Shown here piece after piece: positions 10,356-39,400 of a DNA stretch of 64,000 nucleotides (its first letter is position 1; the number at the start of each line of letters is the position of its first letter). The notes under the pieces are model-generated. The model ran no database searches. It saw only the letters and a list, made by a program, of their open reading frames with translations, and had not been told where the DNA came from. The stretch covers positions 4,558,741-4,622,740 of the forward strand of contig OZ037768.1 of NCBI GenBank assembly GCA_964035545.1, in the 5' to 3' direction. The translations under genes and the position numbers were made by a program. Source of the DNA: Bugula neritina (taxonomy: Eukaryota; Animalia; Bryozoa).

Positions 10356-13300
10356 ATGAATGCTCCTGCTACTTTTGAGTGTTTTCTTTTGTATGATGGA
10401 GAAAAGAAGTAAGTGCTCATAGTCTGCTTTGTTATGTACCAATGTAAGTCACACAAAATGTGTATACACTTTTATAAGTTTACTCTAGCAGTGATAGCAT
10501 GTTCTTAAATAGAGCACAAATGTACTCTGTAATGAATAAAGTTAGTTTATTTTTACAGTACCATTCTGCAGTAGGAACCAGCATCTTAAAATTGATTCTG
10601 AAAGGCATACAAATTCAAATTATATGATTTTATATAGTGTGAACTCAGTTTTAGCCAGTAAGGATTTTAACATGCACATGCTATTATTAATTCAAGGCTA
10701 ACCTTCTGTTTTGGCCACCATTTGTGTAGAAATGACCACTCTGAAGAGTTTTGTACAGGAGACGAACAGAACTAACTTGACTAGATTACTTGGTGTCTTG
10801 AGTTTGTACAACAGCCGAAATCATTGCTATTCAACTATTCAACTCAAACTTGACTAGTAGATTATGAATGGCTGGCCATGACTGAAATCTAGACAAGCCA
10901 AAACCTAATTTGATTGTTAGAATTGATAGTCAGAGTTCAGGCTCATGCATTGACTTTCAACTGAATTTTTATGATTTAACAGCCTTAAATTTAACTTGTA
11001 GACTGAATCATATACATTTCTAGTAAACTGGATCATATATATAACTAGTAAACTGGATCATATATATGTAACTAGTAAACTGGATCATATATATGTAACT
11101 GGTAAACTGGATCATATATATAACTAGTAAACTGGATTATATATATAACTAGTAAACTGGATCATATATATAACTAGTAAACTGTATCATATATATAACT
11201 AGTAAACTGGATCATATATATAACTAGTAAACTGGATCATATATATAACTAGTAAACTGGATCATATATATAACTAGTAAACTGGATCATATATGTAACT
11301 AGTAAACTAGATCATATATGTAACTAGTAAACTGGATCATATATGTAACTAGTAAACTGGATCATATATATAACTAGTAAACTGTATCATATATGTAACT
11401 AGTAAACTGGATCATATATATAACTAGTAAACTGGATCATATATATAACTAGTAAACTGGATCATATATATAACTAGTAAACTGTATCATATATATAACT
11501 AGTAAACTGGATCATATATATAACTAGTAAACTGGATCATATATATAACTAGTAAACTGGATTATATATATAACAAGTAAACTGGATCATATATATAACT
11601 AGTAAACTGGATCATATATATAACTAGTAAACTGGATCATATATATAACTAGTAAACTGGATCATATATATAACTAGTCAACTGGATCATATATATAACT
11701 AGTCAACTGGATCATATATATAACTAGTAAACTGGATCATATATATAACTAGTAAACTGGATTATATATATAACTAGTAAACTGGATCATATATATAACT
11801 AGTAAACTGTATCATATATATAACTAGTAAACTGGATCATATATATAACTAGTAAACTGGATCATATATATAACTAGTAAACTGGATCATATATATAACT
11901 AGTAAACTGGATCATATATGTAACTAGTAAACTAGATCATATATGTAACTAGTAAACTGGATCATATATGTAACTAGTAAACTGGATCATATATATAACT
12001 AGTAAACTGTATCATATATGTAACTAGTAAACTGGATCATATATATAACTAGTAAACTGGATCATATATATAACTAGTAAACTGTATCATATATATAACT
12101 AGTAAACTGTATCATATATATAACTAGTAAACTGGATCATATATATAACTAGTAAACTGGATTATATATATAACAAGTAAACTGGATCATATATATAACT
12201 AGTAAACTGGATCATATATATAACTAGTAAACTGGATCATATATATAACTAGTAAACTGGATCATATATATAACTAGTAAACTGGATCATATATATAACT
12301 AGTAAACTGGATCATATATATAACTAGTAAACTGGATCATATATATAACTAGTAAACTGTATCATATATATAACTAGTAAACTGGATCATATATATAACT
12401 AGTAAACTGGATCATATATATAACTAGTAAACTGTATCATATATATAACTAGTAAACTGTATCATATATATAACTAGTAAACTGGATCATATATATAACT
12501 AGTAAACTGGATCATATATATAACTAGTAAACTGTATCATATGTATAACTAGTAAACTGGATCATATATATAACTAGTAAACTGGATCATATATATAACT
12601 AGTAAACTGGATCATATATATAACAAGTAAACTAGATTATATATATAACTAGTAAACTGGATCATATATATAACTAGTAAACTGGATCATATATATATAA
12701 CAAGTAAACTGGATCATATATATAACAAGTAAACTGTATCATATATATAACTAGTAAACTGGATCATATATATAACTAGTAAACTGTATCATATATATAA
12801 CTAGTAAACTGTATCATATATATAACTAGTAAACTGGATTATATATAGGTGTTGGATTTTTTGTAGAATAACTGTAGAAAAAGACACCAAAGTTCCAAAT
12901 GCAGCCATTTTTACTATAAATAAAGAGGATCATACGTTGGGGAATGCCATCCGAACGTAAGACCGCATTTTTGTAAAGTTGCTTACTTTAGTTGTTACTA
13001 GCTAGCTGCGTTTTCTCCCACCTTATTGACATCTAACTAAATATAATTGTCGGTTTCTTGTCTAATCTGCCAGAATAATGTCAACAGATATTTTAACAAA
13101 TTTTTTTTTCAAAAGCCTACAGGATGCATTTTGTTGTTTTAAATTTTTTCAGTTTTTGCCTGGTACAAAGAAGTTGTGTCTACCTTGTAAATTATGTTAA
13201 ATTTGAAGTAATGACTAAGTTTTGTTTTAATAGTTTGTCATAATAATTATAATAGTCATGTTTTTTTTGGTAGCCAATTGCTGAAAGACCCGCAAGTTGC

Positions 13301-13967
13301 TTTTGCTGGATACAAGAATCCTCACCCATTGGAATTTAAAATTGTGGTTCGTGTGCAGACCACCTCCTCAGACTACACGCCTCAAGAAGCTATGTCAAAT
13401 GCTATTACAGATCTCATGAGTGAAATATCTCTACTAGAGGAAAGGTTCAAGGTTGGTGAATCGGTAGCTTATGCTTTACTTTATTAAAACAAGAATGATT
13501 GCTGTGTTAACTGGTGATATTACCTTTATCATATTTATGATTGTTGTTACTTTTTTCAGCTCAAAATGTTTCGAATTATTCTGTTTTGGTTAAAGTAACG
13601 TATTGGACTTGGACATAAAATAATAGAAAAAGCAAAAAGTTAGATGATTGTGATAATAAATAGATTATAAATAGAAATAAAGTCATTGAATCTATGAGAT
13701 ATTTTCATCTAGCGTGGTTCATGCCATTTTCTGTGGTAAAGAGGTTTTATTTCTCGAACCAGCATTAGTTTCAGGTGTCATCTATGATTGTGATAATAAA
13801 TAGATTATAAATAGAAATAAAGTCATTGAATCTATGAGATATTTTCATCTAGCGTGGTTCATGCCATTTTCTGTGGTAAAGAGGTTTTATTTCTCGAACC
13901 AGCATTAGTTTCAGGTGTCATCTATTTTTAGGAGGCAATTCGAGAGAAGAAGGAGGAGGGAAGTTAG
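10356..13967 (+). CDS. POLR2J: RNA polymerase II subunit RPB11 (118 aa; exons 10356-10408, 12867-12956, 13274-13451, 13932-13967)
   Basis: Spliced translation [78 protein letters not shown]...[22 protein letters not shown]. All introns are GT-AG; 357 nt in frame. Confidence 0.97.
11019..12847. repeat. 25-bp tandem satellite (TAACTAGTAAACTGGATCATATATA, ~73 copies) in a POLR2J intron
   Basis: Period 25 seen directly, no unique spacers; ends ~20 bp before the exon acceptor at 12866. Confidence 0.97.
13644..13924. repeat. 140-bp tandem duplication in the last POLR2J intron
   Basis: 13644-13783 is repeated at 13784-13924 with no visible differences. Confidence 0.93.
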
Positions 13968-15278: not shown

Positions 15279-18200
15279 TAGTCTAGAAGTAACCTCCCAA
15301 AAAGTGCTCAAAAAATTGACTTATTACACTTTACTAGGTGGCCACTCAAAAAAGGTTGTTTCTAGATCAGAATTTTGTGCTGATTCTGAATCTACAAACT
15401 CTAGAATTCTATCTCTACCCAAACTCAAGTTATTGAAAAAACAAACCGACATTTTGGATGGGTGATAAAAATAAATGTGGATTGTGCAAAATAGTATCCA
15501 ATTTTATCAAGCTATTTTGAAGAAAAAATATTTGCTGAAATACCAAAAATAATTGCCTCTTACTTAGAATTCTATGCTGATACTGAATTTAAAGACTGCA
15601 AGGCACTATCTCAAATTAAAACCAAGTTGTTTATCTAAACATATATGTTTGTTATGAATCGACATATTGCATGCGGCATAAGCATGCAGAATAATTGTAT
15701 GACCAAGCTATTTATACAAAAATAAAACCAAAGTCATGCTGATGTGTGAAAAAACTATATTTATAAAATTATAGCACAAAATAAATGTTGAAATGAACAA
15801 ATATTGAAATCTTTTGAGCACAGCCCAAGTGAATCATTTGCTAGTCTGTCAGTAGCCGTTAAACGTCTGCAAAAATCAACAAGATTCTGTAAAATTATTT
15901 AGAGGAACAGAAGCATGAGAGATGATCAAAATCAAATCGGTTGCAGCAAAATATATAACAAATGTCTAAAAATAGTGCTTTATTATGAAAAAGTATTCTC
16001 GCCATCATTGTCACTGCCGTCAGTCTCCTCAGCTTCTTCCCCAATATAGAGCTTCTTTTCAGACAATCCTTACATTGACAAACATCAGTGCATGCACTGC
16101 ATTTGAGACTTCTGACATCCACATCTTGATATGTTGCAGTTGGTCTTACAGGAGCAGTTTAAATTTTGCAATATACATGTTCAGGTGCGGAAGCTTGAAT
16201 CATCTACTTTATATTTATGCTGCCATGATTCTCAACAATCTTTTCATAATGTTCTGGGGGTGGTGCATCAATATAGGCTGTTGTCACCCTTCTTCAAATG
16301 GCTGCCTGATAAATTGCTCTTTTTACGTGCAAATTTAATTAATCTTTTGTTGGAGGCAAACTGTATTAAGTTATTTTAGACGGTGAACAAAATACAGTGT
16401 ATCGGACATTATCTATATTTGAATTTCCTGCTCCATAAAGTTTATAGACAAATTGTTCTACTTCAGCCGCTGTAATGGCTTACAGCTTAAAATACTTCCC
16501 AAGGTGTTCAAAGCTTCCCATACATGAATATTTTCTCGAAAGAGAGTAGGCTGTGCGCTATCCTTTTCCATAAAAAGCACTATAGTCGAATAACAACCTG
16601 TTAAAGCATGAAATCTAGTAGGTGCTGCACACAACTGCATGCGGTCTGGATTTATTTGCTGCAATGTTGACATCCAAATACCTAATATGATTATGGTTTC
16701 CTCCCACCTAGACGCTGTTTTTATTTTGTTACCATATATCAATATTACCTATATAACTGTTGAATTGATTGCTAAATAGCTAATATGCTAATAGCTATAG
16801 TAGCTAACATGAATTATCTAGAATAATATTCTATTATTTTTACGAATTTGTGTGAGGCAAAAAGTAGTAATACATTAATAATAGACACTATATATCTTTA
16901 ATGGATGCTTATTAACAAAAAATCTTTTCAAACAACAGGCAAGATGTATAGAATATACAAAATTAATAAGTTAATGCAAATCAAAGGAATTTATTTATGT
17001 GCTAAATAACAAGCAATTGATCCAAGTTTATTTAAATATACATATATTTCAATAATATTAAAATAAGTTGCACATGAAAATACATTTTACCAAAATAAAT
17101 AACTAGCGTCTAAGTAGGAAATTTAGCCTAGTCTTTATCTGGAATGACACCATGATTACGACACCCGTGTAAAAATATAATTGGTAAGAAGGTAATGTTT
17201 TGCTAATAGCGAGACTTAGGATGAAAACATCAGTGTCTTGAGATTTGATTATTGCACGTAGGATTATGATGTTCATAAGATATTTTGCATGTAACAAAGT
17301 TTGTGTATCTGCTTCCTTATGATCTAATTGTAAACATTTGAGTTCTGATTTCTTAAGAATTCCACCATGTTTGAAAAATTGTAGCTGAACGCAATTTTTT
17401 TTGGTATGCAACAACTATAATAAAAATATCGTTCGCTAAAATATTTTTACTCTATGTTTCACACAAAAATGCACCATAGTCTCAAACTCAGCTTGTTTTA
17501 TTTGCTGATAAGAAATTATTATTTTTGTGAAAAATGGCACACAGGAAAAAAGTACATGCCTATGATCTTTGAATAAGGCAGCCCAAGATCATTTTTCTAA
17601 TGGGTGGCCTAAATATAACCATATATATTTTAAATTATAGGGAAGCTTTAGGGTATTTCTTCTGTAACTATAACTGAGCTAAATTGACTCTAGAGTCATT
17701 ATATTAAGATAGTATAAAAATATGCATTTTAAGTAATAGCATTGTTTTAAAAACCAAGTTGCTTATTTATATATAGTTCAGCCTAAATTTATTGGCAAAG
17801 CTCAATCGTACACATTTAAAATATTATCTTCTGGAGTCCAGATCAACCTGCTCATGCTTCTCATTACTTTTTTGTAAAAGTAGTTATTATAATAAAAATT
17901 GTGAAGAAAATCATTGTCAGACACAGATTTACTTACAATTCGGCTTTTTTATAGTTGATCAATTATGTTTGCCTTAAACTAAAAAAACCCATTCCATTGC
18001 TTGTTTTCGTCCATACAGTCCACTTTTTTTCAGATTTTTTCGCAAGAAAACCACTAGAATTAAACTCAGAGAAGTGAAAAATACATCTATGATTATCTGC
18101 AAAAGTTTTTGCTTGTATATATAATAAACTAGCTTCAATAATTTCAAGATAATATTTATTGAATTTGGACAAAGTTGTGGGGAAACAACTCCTATAAAAT

Positions 18201-18549
18201 TTTAAAGAGCTTTTGTGACTAACTAGGTGGACAGAAAAATTTAGAGTTTTTATAACAGAAAAGTGAAAAGAGTATCTATAATTATCAGCAAAATTATTTT
18301 GCTTATATAAAATAAATTAGCTTGAATAATTTCAAGATATTTAGCCGATTCACAAAAACAATAAGAGAAAACAACTCCTGATTAATTTTAAAAGTTTGAA
18401 GCGCTTTTGTGGCTAACTGGGTGCACAGAACAGTCTAGAGTTTTCACAGATTAATTAGGACCCTTCAAACTCTCCATTTCTAAAAAAATTGCGTGGCCAC
18501 CCCTCGGAGTGTAATGAGTGAAAGATAATTGGAGGTTACTTCTAGACTA
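15279..18549 (-). mobile_element. Decayed, internally deleted Academ-type DNA transposon
   Basis: Perfect 19-bp TIR TAGTCTAGAAGTAACCTCC, 3-bp TSD ATT (15276-78 / 18550-52), subterminal repeats. Minus-strand remnants: HKEADTQTLLHA...SQDTDVFIL (XPG/PIN-like), FHALTGC (H3TH-like) and a frameshifted Cys-rich finger CSCKTNCNISRCGCQKSQMQC/TDVCQCKDC. This domain set and the TAG...CTA ends fit Academ. Confidence 0.82.
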
Positions 18550-19015
18550 ATTTTTTTAAATAGTTTAAATACTTTTTTTAGAAAGGAGGAAAGTAATTAT
18601 AGCAAATTAGTTTAAAACAGAAGAATCGAACAATTTACAATAATAGATAGAAACTTCTGCACTAACTTATTCAAGTTTGAAAACAGCTGTAGTTTTGTAT
18701 CCTATATGTTATAGTGACAGCAACGTGAGTAACTTTAAAAATAAATAAAGTCTACCATCATAAAACAATTTAAAATGACCCCATACCATCATAAATATTT
18801 TGACATCCACAACTTTAGCACAAAACTATTATAAACTGCACGTTTCACTTATAACAGTATATTGCATTTACATTTATAGTATTTACCCAGTAAACAAGAA
18901 AGGCTATGAACTCAGGCTTGGCAGTATTTAATGCTTTGCGAAGATTTTAAATGTGTCAGTTGCAGTTAATGTAGACTAAAAGAAGGATCAATATAGATAA
19001 CCTAACATATCAATT

Positions 19016-22000
19016 ATGAGGTAAATAAAAATTATTTTTTGTTATTTCGCCTAATTTAGCAATCTTATCATATTTAAAGCTCATCTTTTAAAAATCTGAC
19101 AAAATTGTTTCTTAAAGTGTAGTTTTTACTATTGTAGTAAACTGTGGGTTATGAATGCAACTAGTGCTTGAACATACTCTTTGCGTTAGAGAGAATAAGC
19201 CAAGTATTTGAATACGAATGAAGGATAAACTTTATTTGCATCAGATACAGCTTATGTGGTCCTACTACCAGCGAGCTCCAGTAGTAGTCTGAATCTACAC
19301 TGGAAACTCGCCTGCTTTTATACACAAGAATTCACATCTAGAATGTTCCAACAGACAAAAGAAAGTTAAGCTTGACAGTAACAAAAGAAAAATAGACAAA
19401 GGAGAATGAATAATTCAATAGGCCAAGAATTTAGCTATAATAACAACCTATTGAAGGCATTCATAAAAGCTACACAAATTTCCAGTATCAGTATTAATGC
19501 AAAACGATGAAATAGCAAAAAGGGAAAATAACTCTGGAAATGCGTATTTAATGAAAATTACATTATACTGAAAGCTTAATCACAATAATAAGGCATTAGA
19601 AAGCTAGTGCAACTTAGCTACAATTACAGCATTCAAAATATACGCAACAGTAATTATAATACTGACACACGCAGTTACTTGAAAACAGTAGAGGATGAGA
19701 ATCTATCACATTCTCCCCCCATCGAAAAGCATCCCCTTTTCGATAACAAACAATGATTCCACACAAAAAAATGAAACACAAACGTAGAAAAATATGCGGT
19801 TAACAGGAAAGTATTATGATTAATCACACGTAACACGAGAACATTGACAGTTCAATTGGCTATTGCCAGCGGCCCCTGGTTGTCCGGTTTTATCATTAGA
19901 GGTGGTGCACCAGGCTTTCTATCTCTTCTGTACTTGGATCGAGGATATGGGACCAGGCCTCGATTGCGCTATCCAGGACGCACTCTCGGTAAGGAAGTGC
20001 CATACTCTGCCTGTGACGGGGCAATTGTGGGTGGGTTGGCTGAGTCTGTTCTTCTATCTGGTTGCCTGGTGCTCCAGATATCCAATACTGGCGGGCGACC
20101 AGGGCCCGAGGCATTGCCAGTATTGGAGAGTCCTCTTCGTCTCTGCCTGCGAGGTGGTCGCCGTATAGAGTGCCCTGCTCCTCCCCAGCTGTGAGCTGGA
20201 GCTCAACCGGTTCGGGGTCAGGGCCACTAACGCTGGCGGAACACACCTCGGAAGAGGGGGTGTCGTACTGCTGGCTGCGGGGAGCCGAAACAGGAGCTGG
20301 TGGGGGAGGGGAGTCGGATCGACTGGCCTCCTCGGTATCCTTACGCTCCTCTGTTTGGGTATCTGGCGAGGTAACTCCCATAGCTGATGCTAGTGTCTGA
20401 ATAACAGTGTTTAAATTATACTTAGGGGTTTCAGGATTACAATTCAACGTGAGCTGTAACTCACGTGCTAGCTGTGTGAAATCTTCTTCTTGGTGGAATT
20501 CTCCGGGGTGATGGAGGGAATTTCCAGCCAAGATGGGGTGGTCGTCCGTACTGGGTGGGTTGTCTTCATGAGGGGGCCACTCCAGGTGCCCTACAGCATA
20601 GTCTGCCAGATACCTAGGGGGTCTTCTTGACCGCTGGCTCCTCTCAATTGGAACAGGCACCGGTGGTGTTGGTGGCTCCTGTGCTACCCTAGTAGGGGGG
20701 TCCCCGCCTTCACCCAACACGGGGGTGGGGGTGTCCTCCCCCAGGGAGGGTGGTGGTCCTAGGGCTTGCCGCTGTTCCTGTTCCCGCTCTTCTCTCTGCT
20801 GTCGCTCCAGCTGCTCTATCAAGGCGGCCTGCTCCTGGTCCGCCTCCCTGGGGACCATAATCTCCACCTCACGGGGCTGGGTGGCCCGTCCACGACGGTT
20901 GGGCTGACGGTGGGGCTCCAAGAGGGGTGGAGCCTGACCCACCGCGTCTGGGCTGGCATGGTAAGGTTTGAGGCGCTGCTCGCTCTGGACAGAGACCTGT
21001 CCAGAGCGCTCCACACGGTATGTGTGGTTGGGCAGCACCTCTACTACGCAGTAGGGACCGACGAACTTGGGCTGAAGCTTAGCCGACTGTCCGCGCCGCC
21101 TACGGTAACTCACCATCCAGACCCAGTCTCCCACTTGGTACAACGGGGGCTCCTCCGAGTCCTCTGTGCGGGTCTGCCACTGCTGGGTGCGCAGCGCATC
21201 ATGAGCTTTGCCCATGATGTCCATCAGACCCTCCACATATTCGTGTACCGGTGACTCGGGGGCAGGAACATGGTACGTCAGGTGTTCCGGGACCCGCGTC
21301 TCTCGGCCTAACATCAGGAAGTTTGGGGTCTCCTGCGTGGCGGAGTGTGGTGTGCTGCGGTAAGCCCGCATGATCTGCGGCAGCACCACGTCCCATTCTT
21401 CCTGACCTCGACCAAGCAGCAGGCTCCGGAGCGCGTCACCCAACATCCTGTTGTTCCGCTCGACGACTCCGTTCCCTTGCGGGTGATATGGGGTGGTCCG
21501 ACTCTGGTTCACCCCCCATATCCGGCAGAGGTCTCCCATGAGCTGGGACTGGAACTGGGCGCCCTGGTCCGTATGTATCTGCTCGGGTAAACCGAGGTAA
21601 CAGAACACATGTTGGTCCAGGGTCCGGGCCACCGTGGGGGCGGTGGCGTCTGGAATAGCCAGAGCATCCGCCCACCGGGTAAAGTGGTCCGTGAGCACCA
21701 GTATCCAGGTGTTTCCTCTGGCGGATAACGGCATAGGCCCGACGAGGTCTACCGCCACTACTTGCCACGGTCGACCAGCGTACAGCCGGCGTCGACCAGT
21801 GGTTTCCGTGGGGCGGCCATGCTTGCTAGCTTGGCAGACCTCGCATTGCCGTACCCGCAGTCGTACGTCCCGAGTCATTCCGGGCCAATACCAACGCAGC
21901 CGCAGACACCTGATGACCCGACTGACTCCAGCATGAGCCTGCTTATGGGTGTCCCAGATCAGTTCCCGCCGGAGGGCGCGTGGACAGACGACGCGGTCCC

Positions 22001-25000
22001 TCTTCTGCTGGCGGTTGTCTGCTGCTAACGTTATCATCAGGAGGCCATCAGGACTGACCTTGAGGGCATCCCAGCGACGACAGAGGAGTTGGAACTCAAC
22101 GTCTCCCTGCCGCTGCTGTTCCTCGCTAGGTCGTCGGCCCTCCTTCTTGGCCCGGAAGATGTCCGCTACCGCGCCGGGTAACGTCTCCTGGAGTCGGCAC
22201 AGCTCCTTGACGTTCTGGTGCAGAGTAGGGTTGGCGTGGAGCGCCTGGACACCGTCCTGGTGGGTTTCGGTCCGAAGATGGCCGTGCTCCCACCGGTAGG
22301 CGGTGCCCTCCACTAGCTCTGTTTCCACGTCAAGGCGAGCGGGTCCCCCGTCCCGCTGTTCAATGTGCAGGCATTGCTTACAGTCCTCTACCGGCCGGCG
22401 GCTCATGCCGTCGGCGTTCCCATGCTTCCGGCCTGCACGGTGCTCTATACGGTAAGAGAACTCGGCAAGAATCTCTAGCCAACGAGCCACCTGGCTCGAG
22501 GGCTCTGCACGTTTACACAGCCATATCAGTGATGCATGGTCTGTTCGCAAACGGAACGATTTCCCATACAGATATGGCCGAAAGTGCTTGACCGCCTTGA
22601 CTACTGCTAGGAGTTCCTTCCTAGTGGTGCAGTAGTTCTTCTCGGCGGCCGCGAGAGTCTTGCTATAGTAAGCCACGACCACCTCACTTCCACCCTGGAC
22701 TTGAGACAGGACGGCTCCCACGCTGTGGTCGCTGGCGTCGGTGTCCAGGATGTACTCCTTGGCTGGATCAGGATACGCCAGGATTGGCGCTTCCATTAGC
22801 CGTTGCTTGAGGTGGTCGAATGCCTGCTGCTCCTCCTGTGTCCACTGCCACCGGACTCCCTTTGCGGTCAGCCGATTTAACGGCTGAGCCACTCCTGCGA
22901 AACCAGGTATGTACTGCCGGTAGTACCCTACTAGGCCCAGGAATGCACGCAACTCAGGGAGGTCGCGGGGGACAGTCCACTCCTTCACAGCTTGTACCTT
23001 CTCTGGATCGGTAGCGACCCCATCACGGCCAACCACATGGCCCAGGTATGTGACTTCTGGCTGCAGGAGTGCGCACTTGGAGGGCTTCAGCTTCAGTCCG
23101 GCTGCCCGGAGACGGTCAAAGACCTCCCGCAGACGACTGACATGAGTCGAAAAGTCTGGGGAGATGACAATGACATCGTCCAGATAGATGAGGAGGGTCT
23201 TCCAGTGTAACCCACTGAGGACTTGCTCCATGAGCCGTTGGAATGTTGCCGGAGCGGACGTTAGTCCGAATGGCAGTACTTTCCACTTCCAGAGCCCGTC
23301 GCGAGTAATGAATGCTGCTTTGTCCTGGGCATCAGGACTGAGGGGCACTTGCCAGTACCCGCTAAGCAGATCCAAAGTACTGAAGTACTTGCTACCCGCG
23401 AGGGCATCTAGAGACTCATCTATCCGTGGGAGAGGGTAGGCGTCCTGGATGGTAGCGTTGTTGAGTCTGCGGTAGTCTACGCAGAATCTCCAGCTACCAT
23501 CCTTCTTCTTGACCAGGACCACTGGGGAGCTCCACGCACCGTGGGCAGGCTCAATCAGATCCCGGTCCAGAAGATCCTGTACCTGTCGGCTCACCTCCTT
23601 CTCCTTCTCCGGGCCCAGACGTCGGGTAGGCTGCCTGATGGGAGTGGTGTCGGCTGCCAGGGGTATCTCGTGAGAGATAACCTTAGTCAGCCCCATGTCT
23701 CTATCGCCACGACTGAAGACATCACTGTACTCCGCGAGTAGTTGAGCCAGTACTTGGCGTTCAGTACTACTCGTACAGTTTCCGCATGCTCCGCCATACA
23801 GGTCAGCCAGATGCTCCGGGACTGCTTCTCGTCTGGTGTGAGGGGGGTTTCCCTGGTTGTCGGCCACTGTCTCCAGTGCCGGACCCACATCCGCTTCCTG
23901 GATGGAGTGGTACTTCCCCACCAGCGCTCCAGCCGATAGTTGGACAGGTTCCGTGAAGGGGTTGATGCACTGCACGAGGAGCTCTTGCCGACAATCTAGC
24001 CGATTCAGGCTGTTTGCTAGTCGGATGGCTCCGTGCGTTCCCTCAACCATCCCCAGGCCGGCGATCCCTTTGCAGTTGACTCTGCATCGGAGGGTCGCCT
24101 GGGATCTCCCCGGAACCGTGCAGTCCCGCACTACCTGGACTCCGCCCACCAAGGGCCTGCCAAACTTGTCAACACAGACAAGTTCCTTCCCAGCCATCAC
24201 CACCACTGACTTCTGGAAATCCATGTGACACTGGTGTTTCTCCAGAAAGGGCATTCCCAAGATGGCGTCCTCCTTCAGCTGGCTGACTATGAACGTCTCG
24301 TGAATTGCTTGATCACGGACGCGTCCAGGCAGTGAGATGACGCCGTAGAAAGGGATGCATGATCCGTCCGCCAACGTACCATGCGCACCTTCATACGGCT
24401 CGAGGCTCGCTCGCTCTCGAGCACCAAGAGTATCAAAGAGACGCCTACTCAGCAGGTTGGTAGTGCACCCAGTATCCAGTAGGAATGTGGCAGCTTTACC
24501 CGAAATCTTTCCGGGCAGGAAGTAGCTGCTTCCGTACGGCTGGGTGCTCCTGGAGCGGTCAGTCTCTGGGGGAGACACAACTTGGGTCCGCACAGCGGGC
24601 CTCCTCTTCGTCTTAGAGACAACGGGGGTTTTCTGAGGTCGGGAGGGTAGCTTGGGGTACTCTTGCGAGTAAGCTGAATCCTCCTCCACAACCTTCTCGG
24701 GCAACCCCGCGAACCGGTTACGGAGTGGCCAGGCTGGAGGATCGGGTAGACCTTGCGGTCTCCGAGATCTCCGAGGTGCCTGCCATCCGGTTTCTTCTAG
24801 CTCCATCCGGGTTTCGAGTGGCATGGCAGGAGGATCGGGTAGACCTTTCGGTCTCCGAGGTCTCCGTGGCCTTTGCCACTCGGTACCGGCAGACTCTGTG
24901 GAGGTCTCTTCTGTTACCCTCCGAGTCCTATCCCGGACGGGATTAGCGTGAGGCCCACGGGTGGCGGAAGTTACCGTGGGCCTTGGGTGTTTAAAGGCCT

Positions 25001-28000
25001 CTGTCCTTTAGGGCAGTGCCTTCTCACATGACCTTGCATCCTGCACTCCCAACAGGTGGGCAGAGACGGGCGGACAGGGTCGTCCCGCGATCGGGGAGCC
25101 CGCCTGTCCGTCTGGTTGCGCTGCAACTCCGACACCGTAGCCTGCAGGCCTTTCATCATGTTCATCAACATGGTGAGCTGCGTCTGCTCGGGTGATGGAG
25201 TTACTGCTGCCGCCACCTGTGGGGTTGGAGATGGGGGTGCCTCTTCTTCGTCTTTGGCCACCTGTCGAGCTGTGTAGCTTGCCTTCTGAGGCTCTTCTAC
25301 TTGGAAGTAAGCCTTCCCCATCTTCAGCGCTTCTTCTATACTGCTGACCTTGGCGGCCAGCCAGTATCGCTGCAGGTCCGGGTGGTTCACGCTCCGGAAG
25401 AACGCGTTATAAACGAGGTGCTTCCGGTCGTCGCCAGTGGCGTGACCGAAAGCAGCCTGAGCCAGGCGCTCTACCTCGTTAGCGTGATCTTCCAGATGTG
25501 TTCTTTGGTCTCTCCTCATCACTTGTAGTTGGTCTGCCGCCTCTTCAGCCGTCAGACCGAACCGGGCCCTGAGAGCCCGCATGATGTGCTCTTCATCAGG
25601 CCCAAGAGCGAAGCTCTTGGCCCGGCCTGTCAGACAGGCCCGAAGTTGGAGGATGCGCACCCGTACTGGCCATTCAGCGATGGTGGCCACATCCTGGAAC
25701 TCCCTGATGAATTGCTCTACGTCTCCTTCTCCTCCGAAATTCGGGGGCTGGAGGCGATACCTGTCACCAGGTGATGCCTGTCCTTGCCCCCGCAATTCCT
25801 GGAGGGCTGTGACCAACGCCTCAACAGTGAGGGTTGGTGTCTCCGCTGCCTCAGGGGCTGGGTCCCCTGGGGCCATCTTCTTTCTTCCAGCAACTAGCTA
25901 TTCGTATAATCCCACCGCTGCCACCAATGTAGTAAACTGTGGGTTATGAATGCAACTAGTGCTTGAACATACTCTTTGCGTTAGAGAGAATAAGCCAAGT
26001 ATTTGAATACGAATGAAGGATAAACTTTATTTGCATCAGATACAGCTTATGTGGTCCTACTACCAGCGAGCTCCAGTAGTAGTCTGAATCTACACTGGAA
26101 ACTCGCCTGCTTTTATACACAAGAATTCACATCTAGAATGTTCCAACAGACAAAAGAAAGTTAAGCTTGACAGTAACAAAAGAAAAATAGACAAAGGAGA
26201 ATGAATAATTCAATAGGCCAAGAATTTAGCTATAATAACAACCTATTGAAGGCATTCATAAAAGCTACACAAATTTCCAGTATCAGTATTAATGCAAAAC
26301 GATGAAATAGCAAAAAGGGAAAATAACTCTGGAAATGCGTATTTAATGAAAATTACATTATACTGAAAGCTTAATCACAATAATAAGGCATTAGAAAGCT
26401 AGTGCAACTTAGCTACAATTACAGCATTCAAAATATACGCAACAGTAATTATAATACTGACACACGCAGTTACTTGAAAACAGTAGAGGATGAGAATCTA
26501 TCACACTATGTTAAAAATGTTGGCCAAAATATTATTTTTTATTCCAATGTTGTGTTTTTGTTGCACTGTACATGTTCTAGTAGGTGTAATTTATTGCAAC
26601 TGTATTATGCTATCATTAGATTCATAGTAATTAGCTTAAACTAGGCCAATAGTGGCAAGATTTCTCTAACGACTACGCTTTACTCAGACGAGTTCTCTGT
26701 AGAACAAGTCCACTATGATTAAATTTTTTCGACATAATGTTTTTATTTTCAACTCCAATTATAAACTTTCCTCTCAAATACTGCATGCAGCATATACCAT
26801 ATATTAACATAATAGCTGTTGCCATAATTTATAGAAAAAATTGTCACCAATATGTATTATGCATAGTAAAATATAAGAATAGTGTATAGAATACAATTGT
26901 GAAAGTTACTGAATTCCATTATAATCACGATAGCACTCAAAATCAAACATTTGCTATTTTACAGGTTGCTGATTGGTTTGACAATTACTGGATTTTTGGT
27001 GGTGGTAAGCTTTGGTGAAAATGCTGATAATCAGCTTTCAGAATTTCAAGTGTCATTCGATGGTCCTCCTGGACCACCAGGAGCCCGAATTGTAAAGAGA
27101 GGAGCAGCTGAAGGTAACTCTGAATTTCAAGTGTCATTAGATGGTTCTCCTGGAGCACAAGGAGCCCGATTTGTAAAGAGAGAAGCAGCTGAAGGTAACT
27201 CTGAATTTCAAGTGTCATTCGATGGTCCTCCTGGACCACCAGGAGCCCGAATTGTAAAAAGAGGAGCAGCTGAAGGTAACTCTGAATTTCAAGTGTCATT
27301 CGATGGTCCTCCTGGAGCACCAGGAGCCCAATTTGTAAAGAGAGAAGCAGCTGAAGGTAATTCTGAATTTCAAGTGTCATTCGATGGTCCTCCTGGAGCA
27401 CCAGGAGCCCGATTTGTAAAGAGAGGAGCAGCTGAAGGTAACTCTGAATTTCAAGTGTCATTCGATGGTCCTCCTGGAGCACAAGGAGCCCGATTTGTAA
27501 AGAGAGAAGCAGCTGAAGGTAACTCTGAATTTCAAGTGTCATACGATGGTCCTCCTGGAGCACCAGGAGCCCAATTTGTAAAGAGAGGAGCAGCTGAAGG
27601 TAACTCTGAATTTCAAGTGTCATTCGATGGTCCTCCTGGAGCACCAGGAGCCCAATTTGTAAAGAGAGGAGTAGCTGAAGGTAACTCTGAATTTCAAGTG
27701 TCATTCGATGGTCCTCCTGGAGCACAAGGAGCCCGATTTGTAAAGAGAGGAGCAGCTGAAGGTAACTCTGAATTTCAAGTGTCATTCGATGGTCCTCCTG
27801 GAGCACCAGGAGCCCAATTTGTAAAGAGAGGAGCAGCTGAAGGTAACTCTGAATTTCAAGTGTCATACGATGGTCCTCCTGGAGCACAAGGAGCCCGATT
27901 TGTAAAGAGAGAAGCAGCTGAAGGTAACTCTGAATTTCAAGTGTCATTCGATGGTCCTCCTGGAGCACCAGGAGCCTGATTTGTAAAGAGAGGAGCATCT

Positions 28001-28147
28001 GAAGGTAACTCTAAATTTCAAGTGTCATTCGATGGTCCTCCTGGAGCACCAGGAGCCCAATTTGTAAAGAGAGGAGCAGCTGAAGGTAACTCTGAATTTC
28101 AAGTGTCATTCGACGGTCCTCCTGGACCACCAGGAAGAAATAATTGA
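19016..28147 (+). CDS. Secreted multi-copy peptide precursor (signal peptide + 14 KR-delimited repeats); predicted exon 1 CDS 19016-19020, exon 2 26965-28147 with in-frame TGA at 27977-27979
   Basis: Exon 2 starts at a phase-2 acceptor ttttacag|G TTG CTG; the TTG start in the ORF track is intronic. The best phase-2 ATG+donor found is ATG AG|gtaaat at 19016-19026, giving MRLLIGLTITGFLVVVSFG-ENADN (typical signal peptide). Repeats are (G/E)AAEGNSEFQVSFDGPPGAPGA(R/Q)FV-KR. The frame continues past the TGA to ...GPPGPPGRNN* at 28147; AATAAA at 28527. Exon 1 is inferred. Confidence 0.75.
19133..19710 (-). repeat. 3' LTR (578 bp)
   Basis: No differences from 25928-26505 seen by eye; minus-strand TATAAAA (~19316-22) and AATAAA (19231-36). 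Confidence 0.97.
19711..19720 (-). other. Polypurine tract (GGGGGGAGAA)
   Basis: Immediately precedes the 3' LTR on the minus strand. Confidence 0.9.
19896..24995 (-). CDS. pol: Gypsy Pol (protease, RT, RNase H, integrase, long C-terminal extension), probably expressed as Gag-Pol by -1 frameshift
   Basis: LLDTGC protease, YLDD RT, DAS..RKELLA..TDH RNase H, H-H-C-C zinc finger, DDE core, KFVGPY motif. The frame stays open upstream of ATG 24824 through the slippery site at 24989-24995. Confidence 0.97.
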   Translation of the reverse strand, partial: FKHPRPTVTSATRGPHANPVRDRTRRVTEETSTESAGTEWQRPRRPRRPKGLPDPPAMPLETRMELEETGWQAPRRSRRPQGLPDPPAWPLRNRFAGLPEKVVEEDSAYSQEYPKLPSRPQKTPVVSKTKRRPAVRTQVVSPPETDRSRSTQPYGSSYFLPGKISGKAATFLLDTGCTTNLLSRRLFDTLGARERASLEPYEGAHGTLADGSCIPFYGVISLPGRVRDQAIHETFIVSQLKEDAILGMPFLEKHQCHMDFQKSVVVMAGKELVCVDKFGRPLVGGVQVVRDCTVPGRSQATLRCRVNCKGIAGLGMVEGTHGAIRLANSLNRLDCRQELLVQCINPFTEPVQLSAGALVGKYHSIQEADVGPALETVADNQGNPPHTRREAVPEHLADLYGGACGNCTSSTERQVLAQLLAEYSDVFSRGDRDMGLTKVISHEIPLAADTTPIRQPTRRLGPEKEKEVSRQVQDLLDRDLIEPAHGAWSSPVVLVKKKDGSWRFCVDYRRLNNATIQDAYPLPRIDESLDALAGSKYFSTLDLLSGYWQVPLSPDAQDKAAFITRDGLWKWKVLPFGLTSAPATFQRLMEQVLSGLHWKTLLIYLDDVIVISPDFSTHVSRLREVFDRLRAAGLKLKPSKCALLQPEVTYLGHVVGRDGVATDPEKVQAVKEWTVPRDLPELRAFLGLVGYYRQYIPGFAGVAQPLNRLTAKGVRWQWTQEEQQAFDHLKQRLMEAPILAYPDPAKEYILDTDASDHSVGAVLSQVQGGSEVVVAYYSKTLAAAEKNYCTTRKELLAVVKAVKHFRPYLYGKSFRLRTDHASLIWLCKRAEPSSQVARWLEILAEFSYRIEHRAGRKHGNADGMSRRPVEDCKQCLHIEQRDGGPARLDVETELVEGTAYRWEHGHLRTETHQDGVQALHANPTLHQNVKELCRLQETLPGAVADIFRAKKEGRRPSEEQQRQGDVEFQLLCRRWDALKVSPDGLLMITLAADNRQQKRDRVVCPRALRRELIWDTHKQAHAGVSRVIRCLRLRWYWPGMTRDVRLRVRQCEVCQASKHGRPTETTGRRRLYAGRPWQVVAVDLVGPMPLSARGNTWILVLTDHFTRWADALAIPDATAPTVARTLDQHVFCYLGLPEQIHTDQGAQFQSQLMGDLCRIWGVNQSRTTPYHPQGNGVVERNNRMLGDALRSLLLGRGQEEWDVVLPQIMRAYRSTPHSATQETPNFLMLGRETRVPEHLTYHVPAPESPVHEYVEGLMDIMGKAHDALRTQQWQTRTEDSEEPPLYQVGDWVWMVSYRRRRGQSAKLQPKFVGPYCVVEVLPNHTYRVERSGQVSVQSEQRLKPYHASPDAVGQAPPLLEPHRQPNRRGRATQPREVEIMVPREADQEQAALIEQLERQQREEREQEQRQALGPPPSLGEDTPTPVLGEGGDPPTRVAQEPPTPPVPVPIERSQRSRRPPRYLADYAVGHLEWPPHEDNPPSTDDHPILAGNSLHHPGEFHQEEDFTQLARELQLTLNCNPETPKYNLNTVIQTLASAMGVTSPDTQTEERKDTEEASRSDSPPPPAPVSAPRSQQYDTPSSEVCSASVSGPDPEPVELQLTAGEEQGTLYGDHLAGRDEEDSPILAMPRALVARQYWISGAPGNQIEEQTQPTHPQLPRHRQSMALPYRECVLDSAIEAWSHILDPSTEEIESLVHHL
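24951..24995 (-). promoter_or_regulatory. Programmed -1 ribosomal frameshift signal (U UUA AAC + 10-bp stem-loop)
   Basis: TTTAAAC in the correct gag phase (CCT TTA AAC), 5-nt spacer, stem AGGCCCACGG/CCGTGGGCCT with a 13-nt loop; pol is in the -1 frame. Confidence 0.88.
24971..25876 (-). CDS. gag: Gypsy Gag (301 aa) with CCHC zinc knuckle
   Basis: Starts ~30 bp after the PBS; CWECRMQGHVRRHC = CX2CX4HX4C. Confidence 0.95.
   Translation of the reverse strand: MAPGDPAPEAAETPTLTVEALVTALQELRGQGQASPGDRYRLQPPNFGGEGDVEQFIREFQDVATIAEWPVRVRILQLRACLTGRAKSFALGPDEEHIMRALRARFGLTAEEAADQLQVMRRDQRTHLEDHANEVERLAQAAFGHATGDDRKHLVYNAFFRSVNHPDLQRYWLAAKVSSIEEALKMGKAYFQVEEPQKASYTARQVAKDEEEAPPSPTPQVAAAVTPSPEQTQLTMLMNMMKGLQATVSELQRNQTDRRAPRSRDDPVRPSLPTCWECRMQGHVRRHCPKGQRPLNTQGPR
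25909..25926 (-). other. Primer binding site complementary to the tRNA-Leu 3' end
   Basis: TGGTGGCAGCGGTGGGAT one base after the 5' LTR; its complement ATCCCACCGCTGCCACCA matches the metazoan tRNA-Leu(AAG/UAG) 3' end as recalled. Confidence 0.88.
25928..26505 (-). repeat. 5' LTR (578 bp)
   Basis: Direct repeat of 19133-19710, followed by the PBS. Confidence 0.97.
27038..28135 (+). repeat. 81-bp coding tandem repeat, ~13.5 units (14 peptide cores)
   Basis: Seen directly; no indels between units. Confidence 0.97.
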
Positions 28148-28600
28148 TGGGTTTGAAAAAAATTATAATTGGGGTTGTTAACATACTTGTAGACATTAGA
28201 GTATGTTATCATATATAAAATTTATTATAATATAATTTATCCATTATTAAGTGAGAAGTTTAAACTAATTTGCTAGAGGCAGACACATATTATGGTCGCT
28301 AATGTAACAAATTACATGGCCCAATGTTCATTGTTGATTAATTTTTGTACTCCATGGATACTTATAATGCTTTGGTGTAGGCTAGATAAAGACATTGTAA
28401 ATTTTAAATACATACTTGTGGTATCAGGGTTTTACTTTACATGCGAGAACATAGTTTTCTATGTTGAATTTATAGTCACTGAAAATTCCTATATAATTAA
28501 TGTAATAGACATTTCATTATTAGCCAAATAAACTTCTGTACACTAAAATCAATAACTGTTGTGGTGGTTACATGATGAGATGCTTTTAACTTGTTGCTAT

Positions 28601-36477: not shown

Positions 36478-39400
36478 ATGGAATTAGATGACGATGCGAT
36501 CAAACCAGTTAGTGAAGGAGAACTTCAAGATAAGCTTGAGTTTTTACGATCAGCCATCTTGAATGATGTTCTTGCTACACCCAAGCTGCCTGATTTAAGG
36601 GTACTGCCTTCCAGCCACCAAAAAGGTGTGAAACTAAATTATTAGTTGGCAAAAAAAAAATTTTATTAATTATTGTTTAAAGTTTAATTAAAATATACAT
36701 AATTTTTGAATGAAGTAGATGCAAGTATTTTAAACTAATGCTACCAAAAATTTGTAAGACACATAAAAGTGTTTTTTACACTGAGGCAAATCTTTTTACA
36801 ACAATAATTTGAGTATATTCTACAGCTATCTATGGCACACAGTCTAGAGTTGAACATGGCGTGCGAACTCAGGATACGAACAGAAAACAGTAGCCATTTA
36901 GCTGAAAGCTTTTTATAGCTTGTTCTTTAAAATATTGTATAGCAACGGTGTTGTTGTACAGCAGCTTATTTGTTTTCTACTACATGATATGATGCTGATT
37001 TTAGAAACTTTAAATTTTAATTTAATTTTAATTAAACTGGCGATTACATTCACATTTCAAATATTATTTTATACTTGTTTTTGGCATTTCATAGTTTTTT
37101 TATTCATTCCAGAATCTGATATAGCAAATGTGTTGCCCCTCCAACTGATAGCCACTGGAGTTGTCTGCACACATCAGTTAAATCTTGAGTTGAGACATTT
37201 GCTCAGAGAAAAATTTGACGTTGATGCCCACTTTGAAATTACTAAGTACCCAGGTTGTTCCAATACTTGGTGGATTGATCTCAATCACATACTTTCTTCA
37301 AATGGTAATCATGTTTATATATTATTGTATATTATATATGTGTGTTTATATGTATTATAAAGTTAGTATATTTAGAATAAGTAATTTTTTTTTAATTTCT
37401 CATTATATCTATAATTATCTAGAATTAATCTTAAATGGGAAAAAAATGAAAACGCTACATAAAAAATCAATTTTTGCAGCTTGTGATCTATTTGTTTATA
37501 GCTCTTGGAGTTTTGTTTGAGGAGAAGTTGAAAAGTTGTGCTAAGCTGTACGTCCACTCTGAAATGTTGCTCCTTCTGGTACGAGAGATGTCTCAACGCA
37601 AACATCTCAGTACGATAGTTACCGATTCTCTCATGCTAGAGTTCCTGCTTGACGAAACCTTGCCTGGCTATGCTAAACTTAAGAGCTACCTTCTAGAGCA
37701 CCATATGTCCATCACACCAGAGGGGATGATCTACGTGGAATTTACTACAGATTGGCAAAAGAACAGGTATTGTAATGAGCTCGGAGCCAAATTTTGTTGA
37801 ACTCAAATTTTAGGCTTCTAATAGAAGTTACTAATACTAATATATAGTTACATAATATTATTTTTTGTACTGAAATAGCTTATTTGTGACTGAGTTCACA
37901 CGTCAGCTTTTAAAACTTATGCCACAAATTTCAGGATCATCCTTGATGTACTGCTAAATATGCATGCGCAGTTGCAAGAGTTCATTAGCAAAGCTTTCAT
38001 GACTTATGAGACCAAACCGATCTCTCCCAATCTCCTTTTGCAAGTTCAACCCAACTTGGAGGATATTAGTTTTAATCAAGGTCTTTTCTTCCGAGTGAAC
38101 ACTAACAACTGTATTTTAATGGCTGGCTCTCACCCAGCTGTCGAGGCAGCGAAGCATGCTGTTCAGTCCGCAATCGGTTATCATGAACAGACAGATACAG
38201 TGATGATTCCAGGTCACGCTGGTACCGTAAAATTCATCAGTAAATATAAAGACGACATCCTGAGAAGTATAGAGATGCGACACGCTGTTGACATTAAAAC
38301 AAGTGAAGATTTCACCGAGTTTTACGTTACTGGCAATAAACACTTTGTGAAAAATGCTGAGCCCGATTTATGTAGGCTAATAGACTCCGTCACTCGGCAA
38401 ACAGTGTACATCACTGATAGCTCAAAGGTTGTTCTCATTAGAAGTAGTCAAGAGATTTTAGAGAATGCTGGGGCTGCTAAACACTGTCTGGTTTGTGTGA
38501 ATGAAAGTGCAGAGGAGCCTGATAACCTTAAAGATATGTGGTGTTCAAGGTTTATTGGTAAAGTGGTTATCGAAGGTAACAAAATGTGTACAATCTGGCA
38601 AGGGGATATAACAACCTTTGCTACTGATGCTATAGTGACGTACACTAATGGAGATCTAGAATCTGTAGGAGTCACTTCTCTCACCATCTCAACCAATGGT
38701 AATCAACAGAATTCAATTTGTGACTGACCTGTCAAACAAAACTAAAAGTTTTACTAAGTGAATTGTATTATATTTCTAATTGTAGTTGCAATAACATTTC
38801 AATCTTGTAATCTTCTATGTGTAACTTATGCTATATTCTGCTTTAGCTGGATATCCAATGCAAGCTGAATGCAAACAATATTTGCAGCAGAATTTCCCAC
38901 TTGTTGAAGGACAGGTTTTGGTCACATCTGCTGGGTATCTTTCTGCTTCTTATGTATTTCATATGGTGGTTCCCCGATGGCAAGGCGGGGCACATCAAGA
39001 AATATCAACTTTGGAGAATGGCATTGACAATTGCTTTGACGAGGCCGAAGTTCGCGGCATTCAGTCTCTTGCCATCCCTTTTCTTGAAATCTCAGCCGCT
39101 GGTTTTCCTGTCGATGTGTCTACAAGAACTATTGTTCAGGCAATCCTTTCAAGAAAAAAGTGCAAAAAGTTTTTACCATCTTCAATCTCATTGGTTAGTT
39201 TGGACTTTGCTTCTTCTGCCTTCTTCAAAAAAGAGCTCACTAAACACTTCCAAATGATTCGTTTCTTACAACCGAGCCCTAGCAAGAATTTCTTGTATCC
39301 GACGTGGCATTACAAGTTAGAAGGTAATGAAACACTGTATTAGACTGTATTCACGCTATTTACTTGCCTACGTTTCTTGAGTTTTGTTTTCTGTGAAATA

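Follow-up and report, generated by a model that had tools for sequence, protein, structure and literature searches.

A tandem array of 14 head-to-tail units, each exactly 81 nt (27 amino acids) long and with zero indels among them, lies on the plus strand at positions 27020-28147 of the window, the stretch of 64,000 nucleotides of Bugula neritina DNA that was analysed. The existence of the array is certain. In the best model that can be derived from its sequence and surroundings it makes up most of a single-copy gene with two exons. The reading preferred here, held tentatively and with somewhat less than even confidence, is that this would be a lineage-restricted B. neritina gene coding for a secreted, convertase-processed multi-copy peptide precursor. 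Several features speak for such a role: the exact, indel-free period; a frame that continues from a consensus splice acceptor over a hydrophobic core to the array; a phase-matched mini-exon; an invariant Lys-Arg (KR); a private tail and stop codon with an AATAAA downstream; and the 11 copies that are kept despite a premature stop. By analogy, the published FDSIG gene of the same genome, which also codes for tandem peptides delimited by KR, points in the same direction.

Tandem Repeats Finder reports a period of 81 nt, 13.5 copies, 94% matches, 0% indels and a score of 1987 for positions 27041-28135. Together with the in-register alignment of the units, this exact period bears out the original prediction of 14 tandem units separated by KR. 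The unit consensus is GAAEGNSEFQVSFDGPPGAPGARFVKR. The unit alignment has 14 invariant columns out of 27, the closing Lys-Arg among them (K26-R27; 12 units aligned), and the sole change in the KR codons is synonymous, leaving the pair invariant at the protein level. All 13 full-length units end with Lys-Arg, while unit 14 closes instead with a private tail, ..GPPGRNN, followed by the original stop codon at 28145-28147. Unit 1 has a leader that differs from that of the other units (ENADNQL) and unit 13 carries the private changes A>S and E>K. No Gly stands ahead of the basic pair in the unit ending (R/Q)-F-V-K-R, and the number of Cys residues in the array protein is zero, both as predicted originally. 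An X-Ala dipeptide (GA or EA) is found directly after each KR and recalls the Ste13-trimmed spacers of the alpha-factor type. Each unit also has three Gly-X-Y triplets (GPP-GAP-GAR), a run that is interrupted every 27 residues.

The array protein is rich in Gly (17%), Ala (14%) and Pro (10%), has almost no Tyr and features an overall pI of 4.7. The predicted mature peptides are more acidic still, with a pI of ~4.1 and a net charge of -2.4 to -4.3. The GC content is 47% in the array and 31% in its flanks. Every unit of 27020-28147 has in addition a donor-like AAG/GTAACT (for example at 27110-27119; here and below the slash marks the splice boundary), and a weak acceptor-like TTTCAAG/TG occurs ~18 nt past each of them in the same codon phase. 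Splicing from one unit to another would keep the frame and may alter copy number. Because the donor-like motif is present in every unit, the real 3' structure of the gene could differ from the one modelled here.

The exon that contains the array (exon 2) opens at 26965 behind the acceptor ttttacag/G (26964/26965), its first base being the third of a codon, after which a hydrophobic run is encoded. The segment 26965-28147 is devoid of ATG codons and the initiator is placed ~7.9 kb upstream, at 19016. This assignment comes from enumeration of all ATG-to-GT first-exon candidates of correct phase in the segments 16000-19132 and 26506-26964. ATGAG/GTAAAT (19016-19020, plus strand) was the only candidate that paired a consensus-like donor with a run-on into the hydrophobic core. 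Alternative first exons located between the right long terminal repeat (LTR) of an intronic retrotransposon (see below) and position 26964 were rejected, having either poor donors or a second hydrophobic stretch ahead of the existing one. The coding part of exon 1 is thereby modelled as the ATG plus AG, followed by the donor GAG/GTAAAT. The single intron of 7,944 nt (19021-26964, plus strand; ~570 nt before the transposon inserted) ends in ttttacag. The start of exon 2 (26965-27016, plus strand) would code for the rest of the signal peptide, with the core LLIGLTITGFLVVV and then S-F-G. A candidate polyadenylation signal, the first downstream AATAAA, is found on the same strand 380 nt past the native stop (28527-28532).

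The amino terminus of the modelled protein consists of MR, a hydrophobic core of 14 residues and S-F-G, before ENADNQ. In the 31-residue profile of the joined exons the highest Kyte-Doolittle mean over 11 residues is 2.3, and the predicted cleavage site has residues that agree with the (-3,-1) rule, Ser in position -3 and Gly in position -1. It is likely that the gene codes for a 19-residue signal peptide, split between the tiny exon 1 and the start of exon 2 and cleaved after Ser-Phe-Gly. The hydrophobic signal sequence described earlier was correct for the core that leads exon 2 and incorrect for the start, since that exon lacks an ATG and the initiator is found at 19016. The general architecture then proposed, a signal peptide followed by near-identical units delimited by KR and without an amidation Gly, agrees with the sequence. 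In the predicted model neither the splice sites nor the start codon nor the signal peptide is damaged, and 1.1 kb of the gene is free of frameshifts.

The segment 26965-28147, first taken for a single frame, is not continuously open because an in-frame TGA at 27977-27979 (plus strand) had been overlooked in unit 12. It results from a CGA>TGA change, a CpG transition, the remaining units having CGA (Arg) or CAA (Gln) at this position. The open part of the array (27017-27976, plus strand) comprises units 1 to 11, complete and each ended by KR, and unit 12 cut after ..GAPGA, the ORF terminating at 27979. The remainder of unit 12, units 13 and 14 and the native stop follow at 27980-28147 on the same strand. 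The change from Arg to stop and the recurrent change from Arg to Gln appear to be driven by mutation, as both are transitions at the same CpG. The premature stop costs only ~2.5 of the 14 copies and is located in the last exon, a position where exon-junction-dependent mRNA decay would not be expected.

The intron accommodates an intact Ty3/Gypsy LTR retrotransposon, recognised by its Pfam domains and its LTR pair, on the minus strand and antisense to the gene (19133-26505). Its LTRs of 578 nt each (19133-19710 and 25928-26505) are accompanied by a target-site duplication CTAT. They bracket a pol ORF of 1642 amino acids (19896-24824, minus strand) with Pfam protease, reverse transcriptase, RNase H and integrase domains and a gag-like ORF of 301 amino acids (24971-25876, minus strand). 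The two LTRs are 100% identical, showing that the insertion is very recent. The assembly has many near-identical copies of the element, several of them with identical LTRs, and these features together suggest that the family is currently active. The GC content of its coding interior is ~60%, as compared to ~30-35% both in the LTRs of the element and in the host genome (genome ~32%).

Relatives of the gene were searched with exon 2 as query, exon 1 adding only five coding bases. A protein search with the whole exon against the 216-Mb assembly returned this locus alone and no second one, and a profile of the unit found in the same assembly exactly the 14 known places and no others even at E <= 10. 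A word-indexed protein search with the whole of exon 2 or its first 99 residues gave no matches. An exhaustive phmmer search of 1.84 billion protein representatives yielded 18 matches, none of them credible: the seven that were inspected, the two strongest included, are unrelated repetitive proteins in which repeat scores against repeat, and the others have weak E-values. Metagenome contigs and the ESM Atlas contained no relatives. The four Pfam matches to exon 2 are spurious sums over repeats with no individually significant stretch, and four peptide strings of the array were absent in a full-text literature search. The family thus remains unrecognised, as the original prediction had it, with neither a credible homologue in these collections nor a paralogue. 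A strong match to a described family or to collagen, for which it had proposed to look, was found neither in the protein databases nor in Pfam. The results lend no support to placing the predicted protein in a named family.

The degenerate pattern of a published B. neritina peptide occurs at one locus of the assembly, an FDSIG-like neuropeptide gene on the plus strand of contig C3 around position 27,770,400. Its ORF codes for seven copies of SFDSIGNGPIGLKR plus SFGGIGGRPASYKR, identical to Table 2 of Wong et al. 2016 (PMC4990251), a match that agrees with B. neritina, or a sibling within its species complex, as the source of the genome. The variants SFDSIGNGQVEL and SHDSIGFGPIGL of the assembly correspond to SFDGIGNGPIGL and SRDSIGFGPIGL in the 2016 paper (PMC4990251), differences that may be due to strains or sibling species within the B. 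neritina complex. The FDSIG-like precursor (PMC4990251) shares with the array gene the signal peptide and the tandem, near-identical, non-amidated peptides closed by KR, in the same genome. Its unit has 14 residues, however, while that of the array gene has 27 and would deliver acidic 25-mers. No sequence relationship between the two is detectable, and the array gene lacks an orthologue in other phyla. That the array protein is a highly diverged member of the pedal peptide/orcokinin/FDSIG group, which would be a sub-case of the precursor reading, is very improbable. The S-F-D-G of each unit recalls the SFDSIG/SFDGIG peptides of B. neritina, and the non-amidated, multi-copy, KR-delimited format is the same. 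In that group, however, the motif x-F/L-D-x-I/L-G comes right after the cleavage site of peptides of 12-20 residues, whereas in the array peptides, of 25 residues, F-D is found at residues 13-14 with no basic site before it. BLASTP of the array protein against the genome's own FDSIG precursor gave E = 1.5 and hhalign of the unit profile against FDSIG a probability of 3%, leaving the loose resemblance to pedal peptide/orcokinin precursors suggested earlier without support.

If the array gene codes for a peptide precursor, the product would enter the endoplasmic reticulum and convertases of the PC1/3 or PC2 type would cut after each Lys-Arg. The KR sites would not be furin sites because they have Phe, not Arg, at P4. 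A carboxypeptidase E-type enzyme would then remove KR. From the allele of this assembly 11 acidic peptides of 25-26 residues (~2.5 kDa) are predicted, plus one fragment of 22 residues, and these 12 products would have 10 distinct sequences. The ten predicted 25-mers have masses of 2.43-2.74 kDa. The peptides would be non-amidated, and the Pro in the Y position of the GPP and GAP triplets could be hydroxylated. They might act extracellularly, as signalling peptides or peptides secreted by glands. Against a precursor role stand the lack of a homologue, the missing sign of purifying selection between units, the in-frame stop and the fresh 7.4-kb transposon in the intron. Acidic 25-mers that lack amidation are also unusual as neuropeptides, and with 10 different sequences in 12 products their diversity is high.

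The openness of the array is by itself weak evidence of coding because the minus-strand frame across the same repeat is likewise open, over 337 amino acids; one open unit makes a whole tandem repeat open. Between the units 12 nonsynonymous events were counted on 60 sites and 3 synonymous events on 21 sites (ratio ~1.4), and the substitutions are spread evenly across codon positions (6:5:4). No trace of purifying selection shows in these counts for the array, a comparison of low power at 6% divergence. The open antisense frame, the even spread over codon positions and the occurrence of several further minisatellites within the 64-kb window would fit a non-coding minisatellite with an open frame and a signal-like prefix that are accidental. 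Such an origin is improbable in view of the independent features that coincide at the locus and appear to favour coding: an indel-free period divisible by three, raised GC, an acceptor, a predicted signal peptide with its core in frame, a phase-matched ATG mini-exon with donor and a private C-terminal tail. The minus-strand ORF, in contrast, does not keep to the array borders. With the premature stop and the new intronic transposon it becomes more probable that the gene is dispensable or in decay, once or only marginally a peptide gene and now becoming a pseudogene in this genome. This alternative, though unlikely, is a serious one and clearly more probable than the minisatellite. The nonsense mutation of unit 12, the very recent insertion in the only intron, the ratio of ~1.4 and the failure of the assembly and protein searches to find a paralogue or an orthologue are all in its favour. 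On the other hand, the frame has accumulated no frameshift over 1.1 kb and the signals for splicing, initiation and secretion are preserved, the stop is confined to the last exon with the small loss of copies described above, antisense insertions in introns are often tolerated, and both lesions could be private to the sequenced colony or heterozygous in it.

A serious, if doubtful, possibility is that the protein, of ~33 kDa, is secreted and stays uncleaved as a disordered or elastomeric component of a matrix, cuticle, adhesive or skeletal matrix, KR being merely part of the repeat. The proportions of Gly, Ala and Pro and the low pI of the array protein are typical for orphan repetitive matrix proteins, and the missing constraint on individual residues would suit a bulk material. 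AlphaFold2 run without an alignment folded each unit into two strands of a regular all-beta model (pLDDT 80.6, pTM 0.66), which could be taken in the same sense. The model is discounted as evidence for a fold because a control ORF, antisense and presumed meaningless, was also predicted as an all-beta repeat (pLDDT 72.3, pTM 0.70), Foldseek of the model against the PDB gave no match at E <= 0.001, and an excess of confidently predicted beta repeats is a documented artefact of AlphaFold2 on near-perfect repeat sequences (PMC11795689). Moreover, a dibasic site at the end of every full-length unit of a secretory protein is a hallmark of convertase substrates, and residues for cross-linking are missing (no Cys, almost no Tyr). 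A further proposal, equally doubtful, is that the locus provides bryozoan-specific, acidic, hydroxyproline-bearing 25-mers unrelated to known families and prone to form beta-hairpins, which would signal or self-assemble into surface or adhesive material. In each hairpin an amphipathic strand, SEFQVSF, would be joined through a Pro/Gly turn to a second strand, ARFV, and in such extracellular self-assembly the 25-mers would be likened to the Kex2-released repellent peptides of fungi.

Other known systems share single traits with the array. Collagen has in common with it the GPP-GAP-GAR triplets, which are potential prolyl-4-hydroxylase sites; there are only three of them per unit and the Pfam collagen family PF01391 gave no match, so that the array is not a collagen fragment. 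A collagen-like (Gly-X-Y) run of 63 + 30 residues in one frame was noticed in the neighbouring A2M gene (contig C4, 4552740-4553027, plus strand). This exon lies ~5.6-5.7 kb before the window start and roughly 33 kb upstream of the array, with which it has no nucleotide similarity, and a derivation of the array from it was rejected for this reason. Families with a C-terminal FV-amide require a Gly preceding the basic pair, and the absence of this residue in the array units excludes the Mytilus-inhibitory-peptide/PxFVamide and PRQFVamide types. In the apidaecin-type precursors of bees, tandem units are freed at dibasic sites from one secreted precursor, an arrangement found also in the array gene. 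Apidaecins are, however, cationic and Pro/Arg-rich, while the array peptides are acidic (see above for pI and charge), and a cationic antimicrobial polyprecursor of this type was rejected. In fungi, the Kex2-processed repeat proteins (KEPs), among which is the alpha-factor precursor, are secreted and have repeated peptide cores separated by KR, and many of them are lineage-specific orphans (PMC6339444, PMC7329392). The logic of KEPs is identical to that of the array gene, an intron-bearing animal gene, with no homology between them. By architecture, and as an analogy only, the closest counterparts of the array gene would be the KEPs and the FDSIG precursor of the same animal.

Peptide signalling in bryozoans is barely charted, the sole in-silico survey of B. 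neritina peptides listing eleven precursor transcripts (PMC4990251). Should the predicted peptides be real, the locus would add a peptide family with no counterpart elsewhere and a candidate for work on how larvae settle or colonies communicate in this major fouling species. A young repetitive gene that has freshly suffered both a CpG nonsense mutation and the insertion of an active Gypsy element is also a useful case for the birth, expansion and decay of multi-copy peptide genes.

Further repeats were observed in the window upstream of the modelled gene. Positions 10992-12847 are taken up by a satellite of 25-nt period, whose 74 copies are 95% identical and free of indels, and a unit of 140 nt is present as a perfect (100%) tandem duplication at 13644-13925. 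Downstream of the peptide gene, two adjoining long ORFs of 255 and 171 amino acids are found on the plus strand at 37960-39343. The 171-residue ORF has a Macro (ADP-ribose-binding) domain (E = 4.8e-17), and the two ORFs are probably exons of one gene.
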